From: Tubulanus polymorphus
Lineage: Eukaryota; Animalia; Nemertea
NCBI RefSeq assembly: GCF_964204645.1
Contig: NC_134033.1
Span: forward strand, 9,742,655-9,806,654
Direction of reading: 5' to 3'
Length of the DNA stretch: 64,000 nucleotides
How positions within the stretch are numbered: the first letter of the stretch is position 1; each line of letters starts with the position of its first letter. A program made the translations under genes and the position numbers. Under the pieces are notes generated by a model. It ran no database searches. It was not told the DNA's origin and saw only the letters and a program-made list of their open reading frames with translations. Of the stretch, positions 1,293-15,490 are shown piece after piece.

Positions 1293-2095
1293 CGGTCATC
1301 CTTATTACCGAGATGATGTATTTTACCGAGATGAACCGAGATCAACCATGATGAAATTAAATATAACATATTTATTTATTCCATATCGATTTTAACCATT
1401 GAAATCATATTATATCAGTAATAAATGCCTGCTGGGTTCATATTTTACATATTTTGTCGGATATTTTTGGAAAAATAACTTTTAACTTTACCGAGATGAG
1501 ATCGTCGATCAATCAAATTCAATGAAATTTTATTGCTAACCGAGTTTACGTTTTCGAAGTGGCTACTCGTACGGACCCGTACGAATAATTCCGTAGGCTA
1601 TTCGTACACACCCGTCGGATAACTTTGGAATTATGTGTACGGGAAGGGATAGGGTTAGGGTAAGGTGAGGCTATATGTAGTTAAAACATTCGACCGACTG
1701 TCAGCGAGCTCGGTGGTCTAGTGGTACGATGCTGTGCTAGTAATTTACTGGCCCGGGTTCGAGTCTCGCTCTATCCGCTATTTTTCTCTAACCCTATTCT
1801 CCACACTTTCCTTGAATTTTCTAAGTCGTGCACCTCTGTATGCATGCGCAGCGTTAATCGGCCAATCAGCGACAGTTATTAGCGTACAGATCCTAGTCCC
1901 ATACGAATAGTCTCCAGAGTAATCAAAATTTTTTTTAATAAAAAAATATGTAAAATATGACTCTAGGAGGTATTTATTACTGATATAACATGATTTCAAG
2001 TGTTAAAATCGATAAGGAATAAATAAATATGTTATATTTAATTTCATCTCGGTTGATCTCGGTAAAATACATCATCTCGGTAATAAGGATGACCC
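1293..2095. mobile_element. Nested long-TIR element with 8-bp TSD (Merlin/MULE-like)
   Basis: ~110-bp TIRs (GGTCATCCTTATTACCGAGATG... / ...CATCTCGGTAATAAGGATGACCC); TSD TCAGCAAT at 1285-1292 and 2096-2103. Confidence 0.85.
1645..1875 (+). repeat. Dispersed repeat with tRNA-like A/B boxes and TTAGGG-like motifs
   Basis: TGGTCTAGTGG (A box) and GGTTCGAGTC (B box) at ~1714-1765; homologous inverted copy at ~49230-49475. Confidence 0.6.
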
Positions 2096-2390: not shown

Positions 2391-2636
2391 TAGTTACCTA
2401 ATCGTTGGTGGTAAGCTTTTTATAATCGGATGGGCTTGTGGTTTGTGGAAATATCCGATCGTGAAACTAAAAACCACAGTCAGGACTCAGGTTACTGACT
2501 AGAGCAGGACCAGACCGGTCAATTAGTCAGTAACTTGTCTGTGGTTTAGTTTCACGATCAGATATTTTCACAAACCACAAGCTGGTATAAGCCCATCCGA
2601 TTATAAAAAGCTTACCACCAACGATTTAGGTAACTA
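2391..2636. mobile_element. Foldback/palindromic MITE
   Basis: ~100-bp inverted arms TAGTTACCTAATCGTTGGTGGTAAGC... / ...GCTTACCACCAACGATTTAGGTAACTA. Confidence 0.75.
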
Positions 2637-2841
2637 AGTCTAGGACCGGGCCCGACTAAACCCAGATGGGATATAACTAGAAAAAGGGACGGCTCGATCG
2701 ATAGCCTAGTGGTGTTGGTCAGGTTGTTCGAATCCCACAATACATCTTTATCCAATAAGGATTAGGATTTCATTAAACACTCAATATCATTTCTATGGAA
2801 AGTACAAATTCACTATCAACAGAAAATGATAAGCAATAGAT

Positions 2842-4340
2842 GTTTAACATATTTATAGATTTTGGCGGTATTAGCGAGTTATATCGTATGAAAGATCATA
2901 CAGATTTCTATAATATATAAAAAATGCAGAAACCTCTAGCTCAGTTCCCGTTTTTTAATAAATTAACTTTGAACATCTTAATTGCGGTCGCGTGTCTGTG
3001 ACACGTCTCTGACAATAGAATTAGATAAGTCGAATCTGGAATATGGGCTTTTTAATCATATTTATAGTTTTTGGCGGTATTAGCGAGTTATATCGTATGA
3101 AAGATCATAAAGATTTCTATAATATATAAAAAATGCAGAAACCTCTCAGTTCCCGTTTTTTAATAAATTGACTTTGAACATCTTAATTGCGGTCGCGTGT
3201 CTGTGACACGTCTCTGACAATAGAATAAGATTAGTCGAATCTGGAATATGGGCTTTTTAAACATATTTATAGTTTTTGGCGGTATTAGCGAGTTATATCG
3301 TATGAAAGATCATAAAGATTTCTATAATATATAAAAAATGCAGAAAACTCTCAGTTCCCGTTTTTTAATAAATTAACTTTGAACATCTTAATTGCGGTCG
3401 CTTGTCTCTGACACGTCTCTGACAATAGAATTAGATAAGTCGAATCTGGAATATGGGCTCTTTAATCATATTTATAGTTTTTGGCGGTATTAGCGAGTTA
3501 TATCGTATGAAAGATCATACAGATTTCTATAATATATAAAAAATGCAGAAACCTCTCAGTTCCCGTTTTTTAATAAATTGACTTTTAACATCTTAATTGC
3601 GGTCGCGTGTCTGTGACACGTCTCTGACAATAGAATAAGATAAGTCGAATCTGGAAGATGGGCTTTTTAAACATATTTATAGTTTTTGGCGGTATTAGCG
3701 AGTTATATCGTATGAAAGATCATAAAGATTTCTATAATATATAAAAAATGCAGAAACCCCTCAGTTCCCGTTTTTTAATGAATTAACTTTGAACATCTTA
3801 ATTGCGGTCGCGTGTCTTTGGTAATAGATTCAGCAAAGTCGAATCTGGAAGATGGGCTTTTTAAACGTATTTATAGTTGTTGGCGGTATTAGAGAGTTAT
3901 ATCGTATGAAAGATCATAAAGATTTCTATAATATATAAAAAATGCAGAAACCTCTCAGTTCCCGTTTTTTAATAAATTGACTTTGAACATCTTAATTGCG
4001 GTCGCGTGTCTGTGACACGTCTCTGACAATAGAATTAGATAAGTCGAATCTGGAATATGGGCTTTTTAAGCATATTTATAGTTTTTGGCGGTATTAGAAA
4101 GTTATATCGTATGAAAGATCATAAAGATTTCTATAATATATAAAAAATGCAGAAACCTCTCAGTTCCCGTTTTTTAATAAATTGACTTTGAACATCTTAA
4201 TTGCGGTCGCGTGTCTGTGACACGTCTCTGACAATAGAATTAGATAAGTCGAATCTGGAATATGGGCTTTTTAAACATATTTATAGTTTTTGGCGGTATT
4301 AGAGAGTTATATCGTATGAAAGATCATAAAGATATCTAAA
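2842..4340 (+). repeat. Tandem array, 205-bp unit, ~7.3 copies (left arm of MULE-NOF element)
   Basis: GGCGGTATTAG recurs at 2864, 3073, 3278, 3483, 3688, 3882, 4087, 4292. Confidence 0.95.
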
Positions 4341-4452
4341 GATAACATATCAAAAATGCATCATTTGAAAGCAAAGTCGAAAAGTAAGATAATCAATAAA
4401 AATGACATCTCTTTTCACAAAATTTAAAGAATCGTTACTTTATACTTTTTAG

Positions 4453-7400
4453 GTTGAACCACCGAGTCGAGCTGCAGAATTGGTTGAACAAGGACCACCA
4501 TTAAGGAAAGCCGACAATATTCGTCTGCCTCGTCAAAAAAGGCGACGTTTTACTGACTTCCAAACTCAAATCATGCCGCGTTTGAACAGTGGGAGTGTGA
4601 AGTACTGTTACTGTAAACAACCGGATGATGGAAATATTATGGTTCAATGCGCATACTGCAACGATTAGTTCCATCATAAATGTATCGAAAATCCACCGGA
4701 TACAGATACGATAAACAATGAGAGCTTCATATTTTGTTGCAATTACTGTGTTACTGGTTTAAGCAAGCGTGGAATGGTTAACAGGCGCAATACATGCTGG
4801 TTAATTGCATCGATTCAAGCATTTCTGTCAACACCATTGGCAGGTGACCTCCGCACTTTACAAAGCCAAAAAAATCATTTCAAGATCAAATGCTGTAGAG
4901 GAGCTTGCAAACAACCTGTCGAGAATTTGTCATAAACTGTGCGATGATTCACCCGAACCATACATTCCAGAACAGTTTATGTACTCGCTTCTTAATAGTA
5001 TGACCATACCGCAAGTAGCCAATGGACGAATGTTGGATTGCGATGATTTCATTCGTCACGTCTTGATTCCTATTTGTTCTGCATATGAAATCGATGACAA
5101 ACTCATAACTAAAACTGAGACTTATTGTCCGGAACTGGGCCACGCGCACAGTTACTTAAACCAGAACCAGAACTTCAACGAGATCATAATCGGGCGAAAA
5201 GCAATCCCGGGAGATGACATCATGGCTAGTCTGATTCGCTATTTTGAGCCTGAAAATCGCGAATGTAAATGCCCATGCAACCAATGTGATAGCGGTGAAC
5301 ACGATTGTAGGCCGCATTTACTTACGAAGTACAGCCAAAAGGTGCAAAAACTTCCAAAAACACTTATATTGAACATGGCCCGATGCCAGATTGATATCGC
5401 AAGTGGAGCTGTTTATAAAAATATGGACCCCATACAACTGTCTCCGGTCATTGATATGAGACGTTTCATCGCCGAATCAGCTGAACAGCCCTCATCGTGT
5501 AGCTATTGGCTCTCAGCTGTAGTGGTACATCGTGGTGCGAGTGCAAATGATGGTCATTACGTTACGTACCGATTTAACAGGGACAGTACCATAACCCTCT
5601 TCGATGACCATCTAAAGCAATCGGTCGATTTTGATGAAGCGGGGAGAGAAATTACCGAAAATGGACAGTTATTTCTGTATACGATTGACCATATTCAGCA
5701 TGATGTTGCGGTGAATCAACATCCTGTGACCAGAAACGAGACACCTGTCATTACGTCGCCAATTGAAATCCATTACAGCACGTGTTCCGACGATTATGTC
5801 AGCAATGACACGCCGCCGGCTCCATTGTCTTCCGAGGTGGAGACTAATGACAACGAATGTGATACGGATATCGCGACTATTGTGTTACCCACCAGTCCTA
5901 AAAAACTAGAGAGCAAAACAAAAGAACGTCTAGCTGGGATAATACTACCTGACGGAGATTTCCATGCAGATTTACCGTCATGTGGAGAATTCACCTTAGA
6001 AAAGATGGAATGGGACGTGCTAATCGAAAATAGCAAATTGTGCAAAACTAAATACAGCTGGCTGACCTTGCCTTCGAACTGGGTAAATGTCATCCACAAA
6101 CATGTACAAAAATTGAACCCATATTGTCCTATCCAGTATTCTAGACACAGGGTGAAATTTCCGGATTCCAGAAAGAAGAACAGTCCTTATTTTACGGCAT
6201 ATGGTTACTGCAACATGCCCGATTGTACGTGTAAGATTGTTGTCAAAACGGAAAGTCTTGATGAGTTGAAGTGCGTGGTAGAATTCTCCGGGAATATCAG
6301 TCATAAAAAAGGTGATTTTCGGAGACGATATTTCCGAGCTGATGAACGGGAAGAAATGAAAAAAAAAACTAATCAAAGAGAAAAACCCACGACGACTTCA
6401 AGACGAACATCTTAATAATCTAGATCCAAAGCAGATTGCATCCGGAAATTTAACGGGGATGTCAGCTAACGGCGATGTTTACCGAACCATGCAACATGAA
6501 GCCAGATTAGAATTGCAAAGGCACGACGATGTGCACATAAGCCTTGTGAAACTTAAAGACGAATTTATTGCTGACCCTTTCTTTGCCGAAAATGTGAAAA
6601 CAGGCTATATTCAATCGATATCAGTTTTACCTTCATGCGTCATAATGTTTTCGGAAGCCGGTGTACGTGCATTTCATGATGTGGCTGCGAAAAATACAAT
6701 ATTTTACGATGCAACCGGTTCAGTAGTTCGGAAAGAACCAGGAAAGCCAGATCATTTTTATCACTCTATTGTTTTGGCAAATCCGGTTCCAGGTAGAAAT
6801 ACTCCCCTGGCAGTAGCAGAAATGATAACTGACAATCAGACACAAGTAATGATGGAACAATGGTTGTCACAGTTTCGTTATGCAGAGAAATCGTTATATG
6901 GATATAAAAATACTGTAACGCCGAAAATGATTTCCTGATAGAAGTGTAGCTTTCATACAAGCATTTCTGAAAGTATTCAATTTCGAAACAATGGAGGATC
7001 ACCTGAAACGTTGCCATCGTATCCTTGAGGGCAAGGCAACGACAGACGACTTGCAAAAATCATTGATGCACGTCGGCGCCTGTCATTTGATGAAAGATGC
7101 GAAGGTACACTGCAAGAAAATACATAAATCAAATTATCAATATGGAATGTATTTGTTCAGTCTGCTGTTGAACTGTGCAAATCTCGATCAGTTCGTTAAA
7201 TTGTATTATAGCATATGCTTTGTCCTATTATCACCACATGAGTCGCAGCAAACGAAGAATAATCACAAAATCATACAAGAGTCAGTTGATAATATAGAAA
7301 CATTAAGTGACCTGAATGTTGAGACATCTACAGATGCTAATCCAACAGAATCTGACGAAGCAATTAAAGAAACTGGGCGCTTAACCGAGGAAGAATGTTT

Positions 7401-8735
7401 TCATGCATCTGTCCGATCACCGTTTTCTATGATTGGAAATTCTATTGTTGAGAAGGTTAAACGGGACATAGAAAGCGACAAAGTGAATTGTGCAACAAGC
7501 GAACCAAATCACAGACAGTCAACCGAATTGCTAATGAAAATAAACAAGTACTTCATACCAACGATCCCGATTTGGTCAAACATGCTAACCGGTAATTTAC
7601 AACGTCACTTCAAATCAGATGATCTCGCAATAAAATCGCTCCACAATGTTCCGAAAACTCAAGGTATCATGGAACAATATTGGAAAGACATGAAAGGTGC
7701 AATGACTACGTATGTCCGTTGGCGAATCGATGCTCTGGTTTTGCATGCCAAGGACTTTCACGTCAGCCGCTGCAAGAAATTTTTCATCCAAAATGCACAA
7801 AAATTGAGAAAGCGAAGGTGTCCGGGGAAAAAAGCAATCACTTTAGCGACCGAAAAATGGCAACACACACCTAAGGTGTTGGGGAGAGCGAGAACTGGCA
7901 ATGGAAATGCAAAGAAAGGTCACTTTCAAAAAGCTCCTGTAAAATCGCTGAATCTCACACCTGCAAGATGTAAAAAGAATACGATCGACGAAGCCAAAAG
8001 TGTTAAAAGAAAGAGATCAGTTATCCCATAACTGAAAACCACAAAAAGGTCAAAACCATCGAAATAGAATCCGATTGCGACGAAAATGTTATTGAAAACA
8101 CTGGTCGAATTGATAAGAAAAACCGACACGCAAGCCATCTTACAGATGAGATCATCGACCGAGTCGCTGAAACTACTACTTGGTTACAAGATGACCACAT
8201 ACATGCTTTCGCAGAAGCCATGTTCGTAACAAAGACATCGGACTTTCTTCCAAGTTTTTTCATCACGTCGCTCCTTTTGAACAGGAAAGAGCAGGTTGCA
8301 AGATACTTACAAGGCGAACTAGACCCGAATAGGTTCATGCTCGACCGTAAAAAGATTTTCATACCACACAATAAAGGTAACAACCACTGGGTCTGCATAA
8401 TTTTTGACGCTGGCAATAAAAAGATATATTACCTCGACCCACTAGAATCTACTACTTCGGAGTACGGTGTGTATCTAACCGAAAAAGTGGTTGCACTATT
8501 TTGCGAGAAAATGAAGATTAAAAATTTACACGGTGCATGGAGTTACTTATATAATCCAATACATAAACGGAATCAACATGACCTGAACAGCTGCGGAATT
8601 TATATTTGCGCGTACTTCGAAAGTTATCTTCAGCAAATTGATGGAGATTTCAGCCTCATCACATGGAGGCCGGACGCTTACCGAAGACGAATGAGGGAAG
8701 TGTTGAGGAAAGCAAAGATGAATGCCATGAAATAG
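4453..8735 (+). pseudogene. MULE/NOF-FB-type transposase polyprotein: PHD finger + USP (C19) peptidase + DDE transposase + Ulp1 (C48) peptidase; 1 nonsense codon and ~4 frameshifts
   Basis: Acceptor at 4452; PHD YCYCKQ..MVQCAYCND*FHHKC..CNYC; USP Cys box GMVNRRNTCWLIASIQ and His box VVVHRGASANDGHY..LFDD; NOF-type FYDATGSV..FYHSIV..AVAEMI, DRSVAF, ACHLMK (MULE CxxH-type motif), IMEQYWKDMK; Ulp1 WLQDDHI..HWVCIIFD..YLDPL..QHDLNSCGIYIC. Confidence 0.85.
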
Positions 8736-8774
8736 AGGATATAGAAGACAGAAGATTAGTAAAGATTCGTTACA

Positions 8775-9420
8775 GAGATTCGCAGCGGGCAAGGGGATAT
8801 TTAAGGCGATCATTGAGGATATCGCATTTCACGGGTCCTTTTAGGGCTGACTGTGGTGTCGGTGTTAAATAGAGAGATTCGCAGGTCTCCTGGGCAGGAG
8901 GAGATTTAACGCGATCGTTGTGTGGATATCGCATTTCACGGGTCCTTTTAGGGCTGACTGTGGTGTCGGTGTTAAATAGAGAGATTCGCAGGTCTCCTGG
9001 GCAGGAGGAGATTTAACGCGATCGTTGTGTGGATATCGCATTTCACGGGTCCTTTTAGGGCTGACTGTGGTGTCGGTGTTAAATAGAGAGATTCGCAGGT
9101 CTCCTGGGCAGGAGGAGATTTAACGCGATCGTTGTGTGGATATCGCATTTCACGGGTCCTTTAAGGGCTGACTGTGGTGCCGGTATTGAATAGAGAGATT
9201 CGCTGGTCTCCTGGGCAGGAGGAGATTTAACGCGATCGTTGTGGATATCGCATTTCACGGGTCCTTTTTGGGCTGACTGTGGTGCCGGTATTGAATAGAG
9301 AGATTCGCTGGTCTCCTGGGCAGGAGGAGATTTAACGCGATCGTTGTGTGGATATCGCATTTCACGGGTCCTTTTAGGGCTGACTGTGGTGTCGGTGTTA
9401 AAAAAGAGAGAGATTCGCAG
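8775..9420 (+). repeat. Tandem array, 107-bp unit, ~6 copies
   Basis: GATATCGCATTTCACGGGTCC recurs at 8818, 8925, 9032, 9139, 9244, 9351. Confidence 0.95.
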
Positions 9421-10699
9421 TCGAGACTGGTAAGTATAAGTAATAAGTGTTTTTTTCTTTTCATCATTTCAGGATTTCATATTTCAGTATTACTGGACGA
9501 TTCGAATTAGCGATGACTACATCTGAAAGAAAATTGCTATGACAATCGTGGAAAATAAAATTGAATACGTCTTTTCCGTAAAAACACCTAAATCAGCCTT
9601 CAGTCGATTTTACAGCAGTTCCTTGATGCATTTTGGATTGATTTTTTGCACAGACAAACGATATGAAATCTAATGAATACTATGATTACATTATATTGAT
9701 TGATTACGGTGTTGTGGTTGTTGGAAAAAATCCCTTTGTAAATGTCCCCTAGCTAATAATCCCAAAATCTTCAAAGTACCGGCAGGTAAAAATATATCCA
9801 CTCTACGATTGTGCAAGAGCATTTCAAAGCAAGATATTTCTCCAATATTTTTCATTCGCGATACTGCAACATATTTGAACTGTACAATTAACCCTTTTCT
9901 TCGTGATAAATCTTTAAATAAATTCTTAGAATTGATAGAATTAATTAACTTTTCATTTGGAATATTTCAGAATGAATTCATGCTGGTGTAAATTTTAACT
10001 GTATGATAACTCTTTTTAACTTGCGATAGGTTTGAGCTGTGCGATAAATTTTGATAATGAACTGTTTATTTGTAGTATTTTTCAATTGTACAATAATTAG
10101 TATGCTTATGATATTCTTTTACTATACAATAGAGTTGAATATATATAAATTGGATACCTTCATATGCATACATCACTTTCATAGATCTACTTGCACCCTA
10201 AGTCAAGAGATGGGGGATTTTTACTGAAAAATTTACTGAACAAATTTAATTATAATGAAACATTTTCGTAAGTGAATCGTTTGTATGTGTAACTGGGGTA
10301 GCTCTTGTGTGCTGTGTCTGAAAAAATAGAGAACATAGCCATTAGAGTTTATATCCTGGGGAACGCCGAATCATCAGTGGATAAGGATGATATATGATTA
10401 TTAAAAATGTAGGGACAATAATAATATTCAAAGTATTGATAAATCTATTGCATTTCGGAAACTGACCACCTAGAGATACGCGATGTAAGATTAAAGCAAA
10501 TTACCAATGGTATGTAACCTATCCAAAATGGCACAAAAGGCAAAAGTGTCCTTTGAAATTCAATCGAAATTTGTCTCATTATCTCGATCAAAAGGCGTAA
10601 CACAATACGCGTTAATTAATGTAGTTTCTATGTCGGTTTGATTATAGGCCAAATATGATTAGTCAGTAACATATCCATATAATGAAATTGAATAGGCGC

Positions 10700-11302
10700 G
10701 CGCCTGTTGTCAATTAAGATATTCAAAGATGTTCGATTAATTAAAAAACGGGAACTGAGAGTTTTCTGCATTTTTGATATGTTAGAGAAATCTGTATGAT
10801 CTTTCAAATGATCTAATTCGCTAATACCGCCAAAAACTAGAAACATGTTAAAAAAAAGCCCATATTCCAGATTCTACTTTGCTGAATCTATTATCAAGGA
10901 CGGGTCAGAGACACGCGACCGCAATTAAAATGTTCAAAGTCTATGTATAAAAAAACGGGAACTGAGAGTTTTCTGAGTTTTTTATATTTTTTGATATCTT
11001 CATGAACCTTCAAATGCCGCCAAAAACTAGAAACATGTTAAAAAAGCCCATCTTCCAGATTCGATTTTGCTAAATCTATTATCAAAGATGGGTCAGAGAC
11101 ACGCGACCGCAATTAAGATGTTCAAAGTAAAAAAATTACAAATATTTGTTCTTATTTCCATATATATGCTGAATAAAAAAGGAGCGACGGGGAACAGATA
11201 AAAATAAAATTCTTTTGTTTTACCTAGATCCGTAGTCAAGTTAATGATAAAAAACGGCCCTCCGGATCATTCATAATTCATAAGTTCTTTTTGTGTTAAG
11301 CT
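10700..11302 (-). repeat. Right arm of MULE-NOF element: ~2 inverted copies of the 205-bp unit plus candidate terminus
   Basis: AAAAAACGGGAACTGAGAG, TAATACCGCCAAAAA, CACGCGACCGCAATTAA are reverse complements of the left-array unit (10700-11130); candidate end AGCTTAACACAAAAAGAAC on - strand at 11302 is inferred only. Confidence 0.75.
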
Positions 11303-12572
11303 ATTTTGATAAAATGTCGTTTTACGCAGTCAATCGGGTTGATTCTGATAGCGATCGATAATCAAGATCAACAACAGGAAACAATCATAGTATTCGCCAT
11401 TTCAGCAGGGTAATGACACGAGTTTGCATTTTAAGTATTGCCGGCAGTGAGACACGTACGGGAGAACCGGAAATGAGTAACCTGAATCTGGTAGATCCGA
11501 ATAAAGTGATAGCTTCATGTAGGTCAATAGATGAGATCTAACTGACGGACGCCTCGTCACAGCTGAGAAGGGTCATTCTTAAGAATCCGCAGACCTGCCC
11601 TGAGAGGTGACATGGCTTCTCAGGGCAGGAACCTGCCCTGAGAGGCCATTGGCGCAATTAAGCAGTATAAATAGAAAACTCGGCTATAATTCTGATGAAA
11701 CGGCGAACTATCTCGCCGATGTTTGCATGCACATTGTCGAGTATCATGAAATTAAATGGAATAAAATGAAATAAATTAAATGTATTGATATATCGATACT
11801 TAACAAATAAAACGAAAGTAATATTTCAATTAAAATTCATTCATAATAAGACATGTATTTTTAAAAAGTCATGTAGTTAACCGACGACGGAAAGTTATGG
11901 AGATTATATAAATTTCAAAGCATTAATTTAATTATTCAAATATCCTATAGGCCTACATAAACAATTTGTGTCGTCCACTGATATTAGTGCGTTTCAATAT
12001 GCTGTATATTCTTATTCAACTGTGAATTTATTGGGGGTTTCTACTGCTTTCGCAGCAACTCTATTGTAATTCTGCTGATCATATTTTTCTTCGGGGTAAG
12101 GGTTGGTTGATCCAGGGAAGTGTGATGAGATGGAATACGGACGCTATTGTGCAGCTCTTGTCGAATGTGCGTTGTAATTGCCCTAAAGCCGATAACGGTT
12201 CGTCGGCGAGCGCTTTGTTACGTAACGCGCCGATAAGCGATAACCAGCGAGATCGGGAATCTCCGTAATAATTCAGTTGTTTCCGAATATCGGTTTTTCA
12301 TCCCATAATAAACTTATATAAAAATTCCTCTGTAAACTGGTTAAACTCAACACCTGATTTCCCCTCATCAATTTTAGTCGATCAACTTGTATTCACAATT
12401 GTCTTAAATTTAAGTGCCCCCTAGTTTGTCTCTTAACTGCTTCTCTTTAATCTGTTTTAGCGTGTAACTGTTTCTACGTTAATTTTCCTTTAGTTAGTAT
12501 CATCTCTGATTACTTGAATTAGTCTCTTTGTCTCTGGATTGTATATATCTCTCATAATTTCTGTAGTATTCA

Positions 12573-12618
12573 TTATTTCTGAAGATGACTATTAGGACAT
12601 AGACGAAACGTTGAATAA
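12573..12618 (+). ncRNA. Minimal type-I hammerhead ribozyme in a Penelope-like element remnant
   Basis: TTATTT-CTGAAGA-(imperfect stem II GACTAT..ATAGAC)-GAAAC-GTT-GAATAA; stem I TTATTT/GAATAA pairs; AATAAA follows. Confidence 0.6.
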
Positions 12619-13339
12619 ACTACTAACATTTTTGGACTTTTTCGTTATCATTGTGGGATTCTCTCTACATCGCTTCAGACGGATATAGTGTTTTATCAAT
12701 CGTGATATCGGTTCTTTCCGCTGTATTAAAATGGCAACGGTTGTCAACGAAATTATAAATGATGACGATTTTGACGATCTATTCTTTGATAGTGACGAAT
12801 TGGTTCAGATCCATACGGAAATATTACGGGAATCCTCTGGATCAGGATCAACTAATTCGGCCGATTCTAGTGAGTGTTATTCCTTTTGAATCAATGAAAT
12901 ATCGGAATAGTTTCCACCTAATTGCAGGCACTTTATTCTTTCCTTTTCTTTTTCATATAGGTACTTCTCAGGCTCAGCTGACCAGAGACTGCGATCTGAA
13001 CACGAGAAAACACACATACAGGTATTTTTTACATTTATTTTTATAATCAATACAATCCTTTTAGGTTATAAAATAATAAACGAATACAGAAAATAATATA
13101 TAAACATAATATAAAAAATCCAGATAAGTACATGTTAAAATAATAATCATTATTATTATTTTCGCAGGAACACTATATATTTGGAAAAGGCTATGACTGA
13201 AATGATTAACCATCGAGTATTTAAATTCAGTTCAAATGGAATGGCAGCAGTACATAATGGAAAATCGATCGATAAAATTTTGACTACAAATACGTCGCCG
13301 TCCAGACTTGGAATTAACCAGTGGTTTACAAAAATTCAA

Positions 13340-13641
13340 GATACATTATGTTCCGCCATTCACATAAGCACTGCGAAAGATTTGGATAAAATGTGGGCAA
13401 AGTTTCATGTTGTGATAGTCACAGGGACAGTTTTTTTAACGTTTTTGTTCTTACGCCATTTTTGTAATTTGACACGACACATATTACAGATATATATCGG
13501 GTACTGTTCAGTATCATCATCAAAATCAATGTTGAACAACTCCTTCACATGGCTTTTGAAATTATTTTTATCGATAGGACGACGATCCGGAGGTTTCGCA
13601 TTTTTTCCACACAATCGACAAAGATCCATGACTAAAAACAA
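13340..13641 (-). pseudogene. Chapaev/RAG1-N-terminal-like Zn-finger fragment
   Basis: LCRLCG...LFNIDFDDDTEQYPIYICNMC...; after a frameshift LPTFYPNLSQCLC. Confidence 0.55.
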
Positions 13642-14516: not shown

Positions 14517-15490
14517 CGTCAACCTGCCCTGAGAGGCCAGTTTAACTACTGCAGTTTGAGTTCTGCAGATCACCTGCCCTGAGAGGCCAGTTCAACTGCT
14601 GCAGTTTGACTTCAGATATCGACCTGCCCTGAGAGGCCAGTTCAACTGCTGCAGTTTGACTTCAGATATCGACCTGCCCTGAGAGGCCAGTTCAACTGCT
14701 GCAGATTGACTTCCGATGTCAAGCTGCCCTGAGAGGCCACTTTCAGTCTGCAGAAATCAATCTGCCCTGAGAGGCCACTTTCATTCTGCAGAAATCAACC
14801 TGCCCTGAGAGGCCAGTTTCATTCTGCAGATATCACCTGTCCTGAGAGGCCAGTTTCATTCTGCAGATATCACCTGTCCTGAGAGGCCAGTTTAAACTGA
14901 TGCAGTTTGACTTCTGTAGATCACCTGCCCTGAGAGGCCAGTTTCATTGCTGCAGAAATCAACCTGCCCTGAGAGGCCACTTTCATTCTGCAGAAATCAA
15001 CCTGCCCTGAGAGGCAAGTTTAACTGCTGCAGTTTGACTTCCGATATCAACCTGCCCTGAGAGGCTAGTTCAACTGCTGCAGATTGACTTCCGATGTCAA
15101 CCTGCCCTGAGGCCAGTTTTGATTCTGCAGAAATCAACCTGCCCTGAGAGGCCAGTTTCATTCTGCAGATATCACCTGCCCTGAGAGGCCAGTTCAACTG
15201 CTGCAGATTGATTTCCGATATCAACCTGCCCTGAGAGGCCAGTTTAACTGCTGCAGTTTTAGTTCTGATATCAACCTGCCCTGAGAGGCCAATTCCATTC
15301 TGCAGATATCAACCTGCCCTGAGAGGCCAGTTTCGTTCTGCAGAAATCAACCTGCCCTGAGGCCAGTTTTGATTCTGCAGAAATCAACCTGCCCTGAGAG
15401 GCCAGTTTCACTCTGGAGATATCACCTGCCCTGAGAGGCTAGTTTAACTGCTGCAGTTTGACTTCCGATATCAACCTGCCCTGAGGGGCC
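14517..15490 (+). repeat. Minisatellite of ~39/54-bp units built on CCTGCCCTGAGAGGCCA
   Basis: ~20 copies of the same core that occurs in the host MULE TIRs. Confidence 0.9.

Follow-up and report, generated by a model that had tools for sequence, protein, structure and literature searches.

Remains of a transposon protein combining a PHD finger, a USP, a DDE transposase and a Ulp1 protease in Tubulanus polymorphus

The window, that is, the whole stretch of 64,000 nucleotides of Tubulanus polymorphus DNA that was analysed, contains a series of overlapping open reading frames that, when joined, appear to encode a PHD finger, a deubiquitinase (USP), a transposase and a SUMO protease of the Ulp1 type. 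This raises the question of whether these frames are the remains of one protein of one transposon and, if they are, to which kind of transposon a protein with two such proteases belongs. The conjugation of SUMO and ubiquitin plays a central part both in the silencing of transposons and in the repair of DNA, and transposons carrying single Ulp1, OTU or UCH domains are already known; to our knowledge, the purpose of these domains in transposons has never been shown.

The broken reading frame and the element around it

The region 4453–8735 is a former single open reading frame on the forward strand in which the domains follow the order PHD, USP, WRKY-type zinc finger, DDE transposase and Ulp1 (Table 1). 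The original protein would have had about 1,390 residues, and its frame is now interrupted by one in-frame TAG and four frameshifts. Because the reading frames overlap at every break, introns are not needed to connect them; a donor/acceptor pair lying upstream (4384/4452) was considered as an intron and dropped, as it does not preserve the frame. The ATG at 4573 is most likely the translation start. The window pieces are collinear, from end to end, with unbroken relatives, and on relative P0001 the end of piece A falls at residue 258, with piece B following at residues 258–442 and piece C from residue 444 onward.

The TAG occupies the position of an expected Trp codon, which is TGG in the sibling copy, and position 4667 is G in 9 of 10 X4 reads as well as in the contigs X1 and X2. 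At about 4868, a frameshift within the A7 run separates the Cys box of the USP (frame 1) from the remainder of that domain (frame 2); the sibling copy is one A shorter here, and the extra A is kept in 18 of 30 X4 reads. The A10 run has the same length in all reads and contigs. The transposase frame is lost at about 6935/6936 through a gap of 2 nt, and two extra bases are present at this point in the C1 copy, in 8 of 19 X4 reads and in one X2 contig. The fourth frameshift lies somewhere within 8007–8028, and the Ulp1 domain, which begins upstream of the first ATG of its frame, is reached only through that shift. Two frameshifts were seen in every read data set. The preliminary description had regarded the frameshifts in A-runs as possible sequencing errors and the TAG as a sign of real decay, and the reads point the opposite way, with the TAG being the worst-supported of the lesions and the A10 shift being solid.

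Table 1. Features of the element and of its reading frame, in window positions
Feature	Position	Strand	Basis or detail
Left 9-bp target-site duplication, CAATAGATG	2834–2842	.	adjoins left edge; same letters at 11525–11533
Whole transposon copy	2843–11524 (8,682 bp)	+	edges where sibling copies on C1, C2, C3 and C7 cease matching
Left arm, 205-bp tandem array, 7.3 units	2846–4338	+	TRF
Frame 1	4453–4665, TAG 4666–4668, then 4669–4932	+	
PHD finger, cut by TAG 4666–4668	4606–4749	+	intact sibling copy
USP (peptidase C19)	4771–5680	+	Pfam PF00443, E 4.6e-16 on 4805–6412
Frame 2	4805–6412	+	
WRKY/GCM1-type zinc-finger DNA-binding domain (predicted)	5960–6361	+	collinear with P0001 133–258
A10 run, shift from frame 2 to frame 0	6359–6368	+	frame overlap 6360–6412; relatives' consensus switches frame at Lys run
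Frame 0	6360–6935	+	
Catalytic core part 1: DATG motif, first Asp 6708–6710	6360–6935	+	26–41% identity to relatives, directly before piece C
Frame 1	6931–8028	+	
Catalytic core part 2: Asp 6937–6939, Cys-His 7081–7086, long helical insertion, Glu 7672–7674	6931–8028	+	255 relatives, E<=1e-3
Frame 0	8007–8732, stop 8733–8735	+	
Ulp1 (peptidase C48) and stop codon	8007–8735	+	Pfam PF02902, E 1.2e-11 on 8220–8735
107-bp minisatellite, 5.9 units, between reading frame and 3' arm	8787–9420	+	TRF
Right arm, about 2 inverted units of the 205-bp repeat	10711–11142	-	repeat pairing and blastn
Right terminal sequence (terminal inverted repeat)	11387–11524	+	inverted copy at far left end of C3 sibling
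Right 9-bp target-site duplication, CAATAGATG	11525–11533	.	

The reading frame is the single one of the element, and the copy is non-functional; no second open reading frame of at least 100 residues was found in 9400–11600, and an Rfam scan of 2500–12000 gave no match. With the edges of the element fixed by its sibling copies, the exact 9-bp match between its two sides has a chance probability of about 4e-6, and the copies on C2 and C7 end at the same base as the right terminus in the window. The segment 11387–11517 matches positions 11411–11540 of C3 with 95% identity, in the orientation opposite to the remainder of the C3 copy, so that a terminal inverted repeat of at least 130 bp is present on the C3 sibling; the window copy has no left terminal inverted repeat. 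The units of the right arm are 80–90% complementary to the left 205-bp array, which adjoins the reading frame in sibling copies as it does in the window. The flanks of the element are unique or part of other repeats: the sequence to the left is unique, and on the right another repeat begins after 40 unique bases, for which reason no paralogous empty site exists. Internally deleted derivatives of the element also occur, in which the USP and transposase parts are joined inside one element, and the joint between 4564 and 6481 is present in reads.

The protease domains and the transposase

The PHD finger, being split by the TAG, was not called by Pfam on the window pieces. In the unbroken sibling copy (L035:5517-6350:-), however, the Pfam PHD model (PF00628) scores 29.4 bits against a cut-off of 24 bits, and the start of the UCH match follows directly in the same open reading frame; PHD fingers are also present in relatives P0153, P0004 and P0011. 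The USP of the window keeps its catalytic Cys (4795–4797), His (5555–5557) and Asp (5603–5608), and its closest solved relatives are USP12, USP46 and USP28. A homologous-protein search with the window USP gave no matches, and the same search with the USP of P0153 returned one sea-cucumber paralog only, with no cellular USPs retrieved. The Ulp1 domain is matched by yeast Ulp1 (1EUV) at E 2.5e-5 with His 8385, Asp 8436, Gln 8574 and Cys 8592 all aligned. The catalytic residues of the USP, the transposase and the Ulp1 are thus all still present in this dead copy; the earlier reading of both proteases as intact in their catalytic boxes holds. By its family, the C48 domain is predicted to be a Ulp1-type SUMO protease, the substrate of which may be SUMO, NEDD8 or another modifier.

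The transposase begins with a predicted zinc finger whose Cys, Cys, Cys and His residues are conserved, and the corresponding part of the P0001 model matches the folds of WRKY18, WRKY33, WRKY1 and AFT2. In the alignment of relatives (A1), which retrieved 9 proteins in a homologous-protein search, D235 is near-invariant and A236 and G238 of the DATG motif are invariant. The catalytic Glu, E569, is kept in all 24 sequences, D235 and D315 are also conserved, and all three residues are present in the window, the spacing from the second Asp to the Glu being long at about 253 residues. After the second Asp, a C361-x2-H364 motif is found in 29 of 30 relatives; in the window and in the sea-cucumber clade the Cys stands directly before the His (7081–7086).

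The preliminary description had named this core a NOF/MULE DDE transposase, and the assignment stands by fold, at the fold or superfamily level only, the Pfam MULE profile having failed to match the core. The AF2 model of P0001 residues 130–775 has a pLDDT of 84, and its best solved match is the IS256-family transposase ISCth4 (Foldseek probability 1.0), with a VIA Z score of 11.8 over 274 residues as compared with 9.1 for Hermes and 8.9 for the P-element transposase. In the ESM Atlas, the best fold match (TM 0.65 over 486 residues) is to a cluster bearing the name '120.7 kDa protein in NOF-FB transposable element', in which 45% of the members carry PF02902 (Ulp1) and 34% PF00628 (PHD). The Atlas matches that follow this cluster are MULE clusters, and the language-model neighbors of the transposase are mostly PF10551 MULE clusters. 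By sequence profile, PF10551 gave no match in the window pieces at E<=10, Pfam identified no significant transposase family in the window pieces or in 30 relatives (MULE at E 0.11 in 1 of 30 and KDZ, PF18758, at 0.17 in 1 of 30), and a profile search of PDB sequences with the transposase gave no match.

The unmatched MULE profile, the single weak KDZ match, the Z scores of Hermes and the P element and the wide Asp-Glu spacing would also fit a transposase from another Ulp1-bearing superfamily (Zisupton/KDZ) or one related to hAT or P elements, in which case the MULE/NOF label would be wrong. We consider this very unlikely, since ISCth4 exceeds Hermes and P by about 3 Z units and has more residues covered, the zinc finger is of the WRKY type, and the Atlas neighbors are the NOF-FB cluster and then the MULE clusters. 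Membership in Zisupton/KDZ was rejected on the target-site duplication, which has 9 bp here and 8 bp in Zisupton (PMC12730594), and on the occurrence of PF18758 just once among the relatives. The duplication falls at the typical length for Mutator-type elements (8–11 bp, typically 9), a long terminal inverted repeat is present on the C3 sibling, and the tandem-repeat foldback arms and the 3' minisatellite expected of NOF/Rehavkus elements are found in the form of the 205-bp array with its inverted units and of the 107-bp array, respectively. The segment 2843–11524 is therefore probably the dead remnant of a cut-and-paste element that belongs to the Mutator (MULE) superfamily and, within it, to the foldback NOF/Rehavkus type, with a PHD-USP-transposase-Ulp1 protein; the link to NOF/Rehavkus is drawn from the fold, from the name assigned automatically to the cluster and from structural traits in the literature rather than from a sequence alignment with NOF or Rehavkus.

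The fusion elsewhere and the possible roles of the two proteases

Two paralogous copies, on contigs C2 and C4, each have one open frame of 1758 residues with all domains in phase, as judged from their coordinates, identity and open-frame length alone. The identity of these frames to the window is 50% in the half-PHD/Cys box, 43% in the USP with the zinc finger, 49% in the transposase and 38% in Ulp1. The sea-cucumber (Apostichopus) proteins have the same domain order as the window, whereas the cnidarian, shrimp, rotifer and metagenome relatives have these domains in a different order; in other animal phyla the usual sequence in this clade is transposase, USP, Ulp1. Among 156 transposase relatives, USP and/or Ulp1 domains were found in 42, the sources being Apostichopus, Palaemon, Clytia, Adineta and Rotaria; the transposase is followed by a USP in 34 (12 of these with Ulp1 too) and preceded by a USP in 3, and a relative from Actinia has the transposase with neither USP nor Ulp1. 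The relatives' proteins are very long, at 1,400–2,100 residues, with long linkers. In the tree, which included the window pieces linked by X at the two breaks, the order of the domains differs between clades and the set is retained. The clade is represented in at least 4 named animal phyla, or at least 5 counting that of the present genome.

The reading frames, the Pfam matches, the collinear relatives, the sibling copy and the 1758-residue paralogs all agree with the single protein of about 1400 residues that had been proposed at the outset. The weakness foreseen for that proposal was a USP belonging to a separate gene or insertion. Capture of host gene fragments by MULEs is established (PMC6446971), and the USP could in principle be such a fragment of a neighboring gene, or a chance insertion, in the window copy only. 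This reading is rejected as extremely improbable: the USP shares its frame with the PHD finger in the sibling, with all domains in the two paralogs (at 43% identity in this part) and in the sea-cucumber proteins, in the same order, and the deleted derivatives join the USP and transposase parts inside one element. The combination of USP and Ulp1 on one transposase had also been thought unusual, but it is a common one among the members of this transposase clade. A literature search found no paper describing it. Since the fusion is intact elsewhere in the genome and in several animal phyla, it represents a real but little-described transposon design. The retention of two deconjugases and a histone reader across phyla, despite the change in order, argues for selected parts and not captured debris.

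The conservation of both protease domains across phyla further suggests that both matter to the element. Their likeliest function would be to strip ubiquitin and SUMO locally from chromatin or from the transposition complex, with the PHD finger docking the protein on histone H3 tails. We tentatively propose that in this way the two proteases may have an anti-silencing role, counteracting silencing that depends on SUMO and ubiquitin, and/or may rid the excision and insertion site of modified factors. It is conceivable, if some way from probable, that this animal clade of NOF/Rehavkus type encodes a chromatin-docked double eraser, in which the PHD-guided USP and Ulp1 strip marks from the element's own chromatin as a counter-defence. 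In that case the intact 1758-residue paralogs would be a live and directly testable example.

A rather doubtful alternative is that the proteases serve transposition itself by removing ubiquitin or SUMO either from the transposase, which would stabilise itself, or from factors of repair and replication that act at the break, PCNA for example, and thereby help disassembly of the complex and gap repair. The description of Ginger elements proposes just such a role for the Ulp1 and OTU domains of transposases and points out that both modifiers regulate the pathways of DNA repair (PMC2836005). The fusion of the protease domains to the transposase, instead of their being encoded by a separate gene, speaks for a service in transposition, which leaves the PHD finger, a reader of histone tails, unexplained. 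A service in transposition and an anti-silencing role are not mutually exclusive. We consider it improbable that the USP and Ulp1 are self-processing proteases that cut a polyprotein after Gly-Gly-like sites into a transposase and accessory proteins. The USP-like and adenain-like proteases of some viruses do cut polyproteins, and the length of the relatives' proteins and linkers would suit such processing; however, the linkers yielded no conserved cleavage motif, a single protease would suffice, and the domain order shifts between clades while the set is kept. Whichever role applies, the window copy is a pseudogene that matters only as a pointer to the transposon family, and the intact paralogs provide the genes for biochemical and transposition tests.

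Comparison with known systems

The closest described elements are those named Rehavkus (Repbase; now placed under MuDR/MULE), which we take to be the MULE-NOF class of RepeatMasker; a literature search found no paper naming both Rehavkus and NOF. By their published descriptions, Rehavkus elements share with the window family the 9-bp target-site duplication, long terminal inverted repeats, subterminal tandem repeats, the PHD finger and a minisatellite before the 3' terminal inverted repeat, the last being a stated trait of Rehavkus (PMC6446971). They differ, again as compared by description, in that the literature found mentions no USP or Ulp1 and gives insects and annelids as the only hosts. 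The cluster of the Drosophila NOF-FB 120.7 kDa protein resembles the window family, through predicted structure, in its transposase fold, Ulp1 and PHD finger, and differs in that no USP is listed for it. NOF sits inside foldback (FB) arms that are built of tandem repeats.

The bacterial ISCth4/IS256 transposases provide the best solved match of the core, with the helical insertion included, but the sequence identity is about 10% and they are without the zinc finger and the accessory domains. Among prokaryotic elements, IS256 is the recognized relative of MULEs. In plant Mutator elements, Ulp1 is often a separate gene. Mutator elements with Ulp1, KI-MULEs among them, occur in plants, hydra and lancelet; they share the C48 domain (PMC2836005) and have Ulp1 alone, whereas the window family fuses USP, Ulp1 and PHD to the transposase. 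The theme of a ubiquitin-family protease recruited by a DNA transposon extends to Helitron-like elements with OTU, UCH or C48 domains (PMC11417382) and to Ginger1 transposases with OTU or Ulp1 and, in some, a PHD finger (PMC2836005), although the RepHel enzymes of the former and the integrase-like enzymes of the latter are unrelated to the window transposase. Ginger1 transposases carry OTU or Ulp1 but never both (PMC2836005), whereas in the family described here two deconjugases of different specificity are found on one polypeptide.

Reading frames and unity of the protein

The former coding region at 4453–8735 is divided among five overlapping open pieces (see the table), and since the reading always shifts where two open frames overlap, point lesions rather than introns account for the breaks. 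Pfam assigned a ubiquitin protease (USP; PF00443, E 4.6e-16) to piece 2 and a SUMO protease (Ulp1; PF02902, E 1.2e-11) to piece 5, while pieces 3 and 4 had no match at thresholds up to E 10. When piece 4 was searched against 1.84 billion representative proteins, 255 relatives were found at E≤1e-3, and on the unbroken ones the end of piece 2, piece 3 and piece 4 abut in series. On the sea-cucumber relative P0001 these occupy residues 133–258, 258–442 and 444–762, with Ulp1 next.

The preliminary description had proposed a single PHD-USP-transposase-Ulp1 protein, and its proposal is borne out by this collinearity and by near-identical loci on contigs C2 and C4 of the same genome, each holding one 1758-residue open frame with all parts in phase. 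These frames are the strongest sign that the window pieces belong to one protein. They are 50% identical to the window over the half-PHD plus Cys box, 43% over the USP plus zinc finger, 49% over the transposase core and 38% over Ulp1, and may represent an active family. A sibling copy on contig C3 (97–99% identity) has TGG at the position of the stop, its A run at 4868 is shorter by one base, and its 277-residue ORF passes uninterrupted from PHD (29.4 bits) into the start of the USP. Whether the USP is separate in other copies is thereby answered: it is in frame with PHD in this sibling and with all parts in the C2 and C4 frames. The window copy retains the full set of USP, transposase and Ulp1 catalytic residues, as had been claimed for the two proteases.

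The lesions were compared with reads and contigs from three sequencing runs of the same species (X4, Illumina reads; X1 and X2, contigs). The TAG stop is uncommon, confined to the individual that was assembled, or erroneous. The 2-nt absence in one X2 contig matches the decayed C6a sibling. On this evidence two or more of the frameshifts are real, which makes the copy a pseudogene and reverses the earlier guess that the A-run frameshifts might be errors and the poorly backed TAG real decay. The A10 frameshift is common to every read set; that polymerase slippage there gives some in-frame product is speculation.

Features of the element, its lesions, its paralogues and the neighbouring repeats
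Feature	Position	Strand, frame	Detail
Element	2843–11524	+	edges set by comparison with sibling copies
Open piece 1	4453–4665, TAG, 4669–4932	+, 1	
Open piece 2	4805–6412	+, 2	
Open piece 3	6360–6935	+, 0	
Open piece 4	6931–8028	+, 1	
Open piece 5	8007–8732	+, 0	
TAG	4667		G (Trp codon) in 9/10 Illumina reads and both contig sets
Extra A	4868		kept in 18/30 reads
A10 run	6359–6368		single length throughout, no alternative
2-nt gap	6935		in 11/19 reads; remaining reads can derive from sibling copies
Frameshift	8007–8028		X4 reads and X1 contigs show no other form; in X2, one contig is 2 nt shorter at 8012
205-bp tandem array	left arm		7.3 units
Inverted 205-bp units	10711–11142		about two
107-bp minisatellite	3' of ORF		5.9 units
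Paralogous PHD-USP-transposase-Ulp1 frame	G000:C2:~24201977–24207250		outside window
Paralogous PHD-USP-transposase-Ulp1 frame	G000:C4:~26323813–26329086		outside window
Inverted arms	1294–1455, 1943–2094		flank the 1553–1924 repeat
High-copy repeat, ~370 bp	1553–1924		at least 40 copies, 92–97% identity
Separate repeat family	11565–12112		~15 long copies, 91–98% identity; begins 40 bp past the element's right end
Very young high-copy repeat	12113–13400 and beyond		at least 40 copies genome-wide, 98–100% identity
GC-richer complex tandem array	14519–15445		nested periods 38, 50, 100, 175 bp

Element anatomy and class of the transposase

The same 9 bases, CAATAGATG, adjoin both edges of the element, in which neither a second ORF nor an Rfam match was found. 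At its far left end the C3 sibling repeats, in inverted orientation, the last ~130 bp of the window copy's right end, which is the terminal inverted repeat (TIR). The left end of the window copy falls within the tandem array. Compared with the siblings on C1 (L036/L043) and C3 (L035/L042), it is short of ~1.9 kb, and the left TIR is part of what is missing. The 9-bp duplication is perfect despite this, and the copy may have been mobilised with an array unit serving as transposon end. Other copies are internally deleted derivatives, and one such deletion (joint 4564 to 6481) is also present in reads of another sample. Outside the element, the whole of 1294–2094 looks like a MITE nested inside another inverted-repeat element.

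Thirty relatives were aligned, and the structure of P0001 residues 130–775 was predicted (pLDDT 84, pTM 0.73). Of the solved structures, the IS256-family transposase ISCth4 matches best (Foldseek probability 1.0), with a VIA Z score of 11.8 over 274 residues versus 9.1 for Hermes and 8.9 for the P element, and the N-terminal 110 residues of the model resemble the zinc-finger folds of WRKY18, WRKY33 and AFT2. Conserved positions run from DATG across ~79 residues to D, and on through C-x2-H and ~250 helical residues to E. In the ESM Atlas the top fold match (TM 0.65, 486 residues) is a cluster auto-named '120.7 kDa protein in NOF-FB transposable element', members of which bear Ulp1 and PHD; MULE clusters rank after it, and form the majority among language-model neighbours. 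Zisupton is disfavoured by the 9-bp duplication and by the lack of a KDZ match. The traits published for Rehavkus elements agree with this anatomy: kinship to MULEs, a 9-bp target-site duplication, a PHD finger, long TIRs that carry tandem repeats subterminally, and a minisatellite 5' of the 3' TIR. The earlier 'NOF-type' label is thus supported at the level of predicted fold and of anatomy as compared with published traits; the Pfam MULE profile is unmatched.

The protease fusion among relatives and its possible role

Those USP and Ulp1 segments that Pfam had confirmed were made into local profiles, with which 156 relatives were scanned. The order transposase-USP-Ulp1 was found in 12 proteins, transposase then USP only in 22 (many incomplete), transposase then Ulp1 in five and USP then transposase in three; Pfam confirmed the arrangements on 17 relatives, three of which (P0004, P0011, P0153) have N-terminal PHD fingers. 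The relatives with a named source come from Apostichopus japonicus, Palaemon carinicauda, Clytia hemisphaerica, Adineta steineri and Rotaria, and one more relative, from Actinia tenebrosa, has the transposase only. In P0004, P0011, P0013, P0019 and P0025 (transposase-USP-Ulp1) ~280–380 residues without a Pfam match separate USP from Ulp1, a stretch absent from the window family. A tree of the transposase core, from which P0153 (also USP before transposase) was left out as having too little core, places the window and the sea-cucumber proteins P0001 and P0151 in one clade (SH-aLRT 100) with the USP N-terminal of the transposase, whereas it is C-terminal in the sister groups. By the tree and the shared domains, the domain set is old and conserved, and the window's domain order is either a clade-specific rearrangement or a re-capture.

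Retention of the catalytic sets across phyla and through this reshuffling suggests selection on both proteases. They may act in a transposition or repair complex or stabilise the transposase, which is the main alternative, or, less probably, self-process a polyprotein. We prefer a reading in which deconjugation opposes heterochromatin: the PHD finger would dock the protein onto H3 tails, and the USP and Ulp1 would remove ubiquitin and SUMO locally, hindering the packaging of the element into SUMO- and ubiquitin-dependent heterochromatin.

In a search of papers other than Repbase reports, none was found to describe a transposase bearing both USP and Ulp1. Published cases are Mutator and CACTA elements with Ulp1, Ginger1 with Ulp1 or OTU, Helitrons with OTU, Helitron-like elements with UCH and C48, and an IS5-like transposase that carries a C19 domain (PMC2836005, PMC11417382). 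Ginger1 elements carry OTU or Ulp1 but never both (PMC2836005), whereas the present element carries USP and Ulp1 together.
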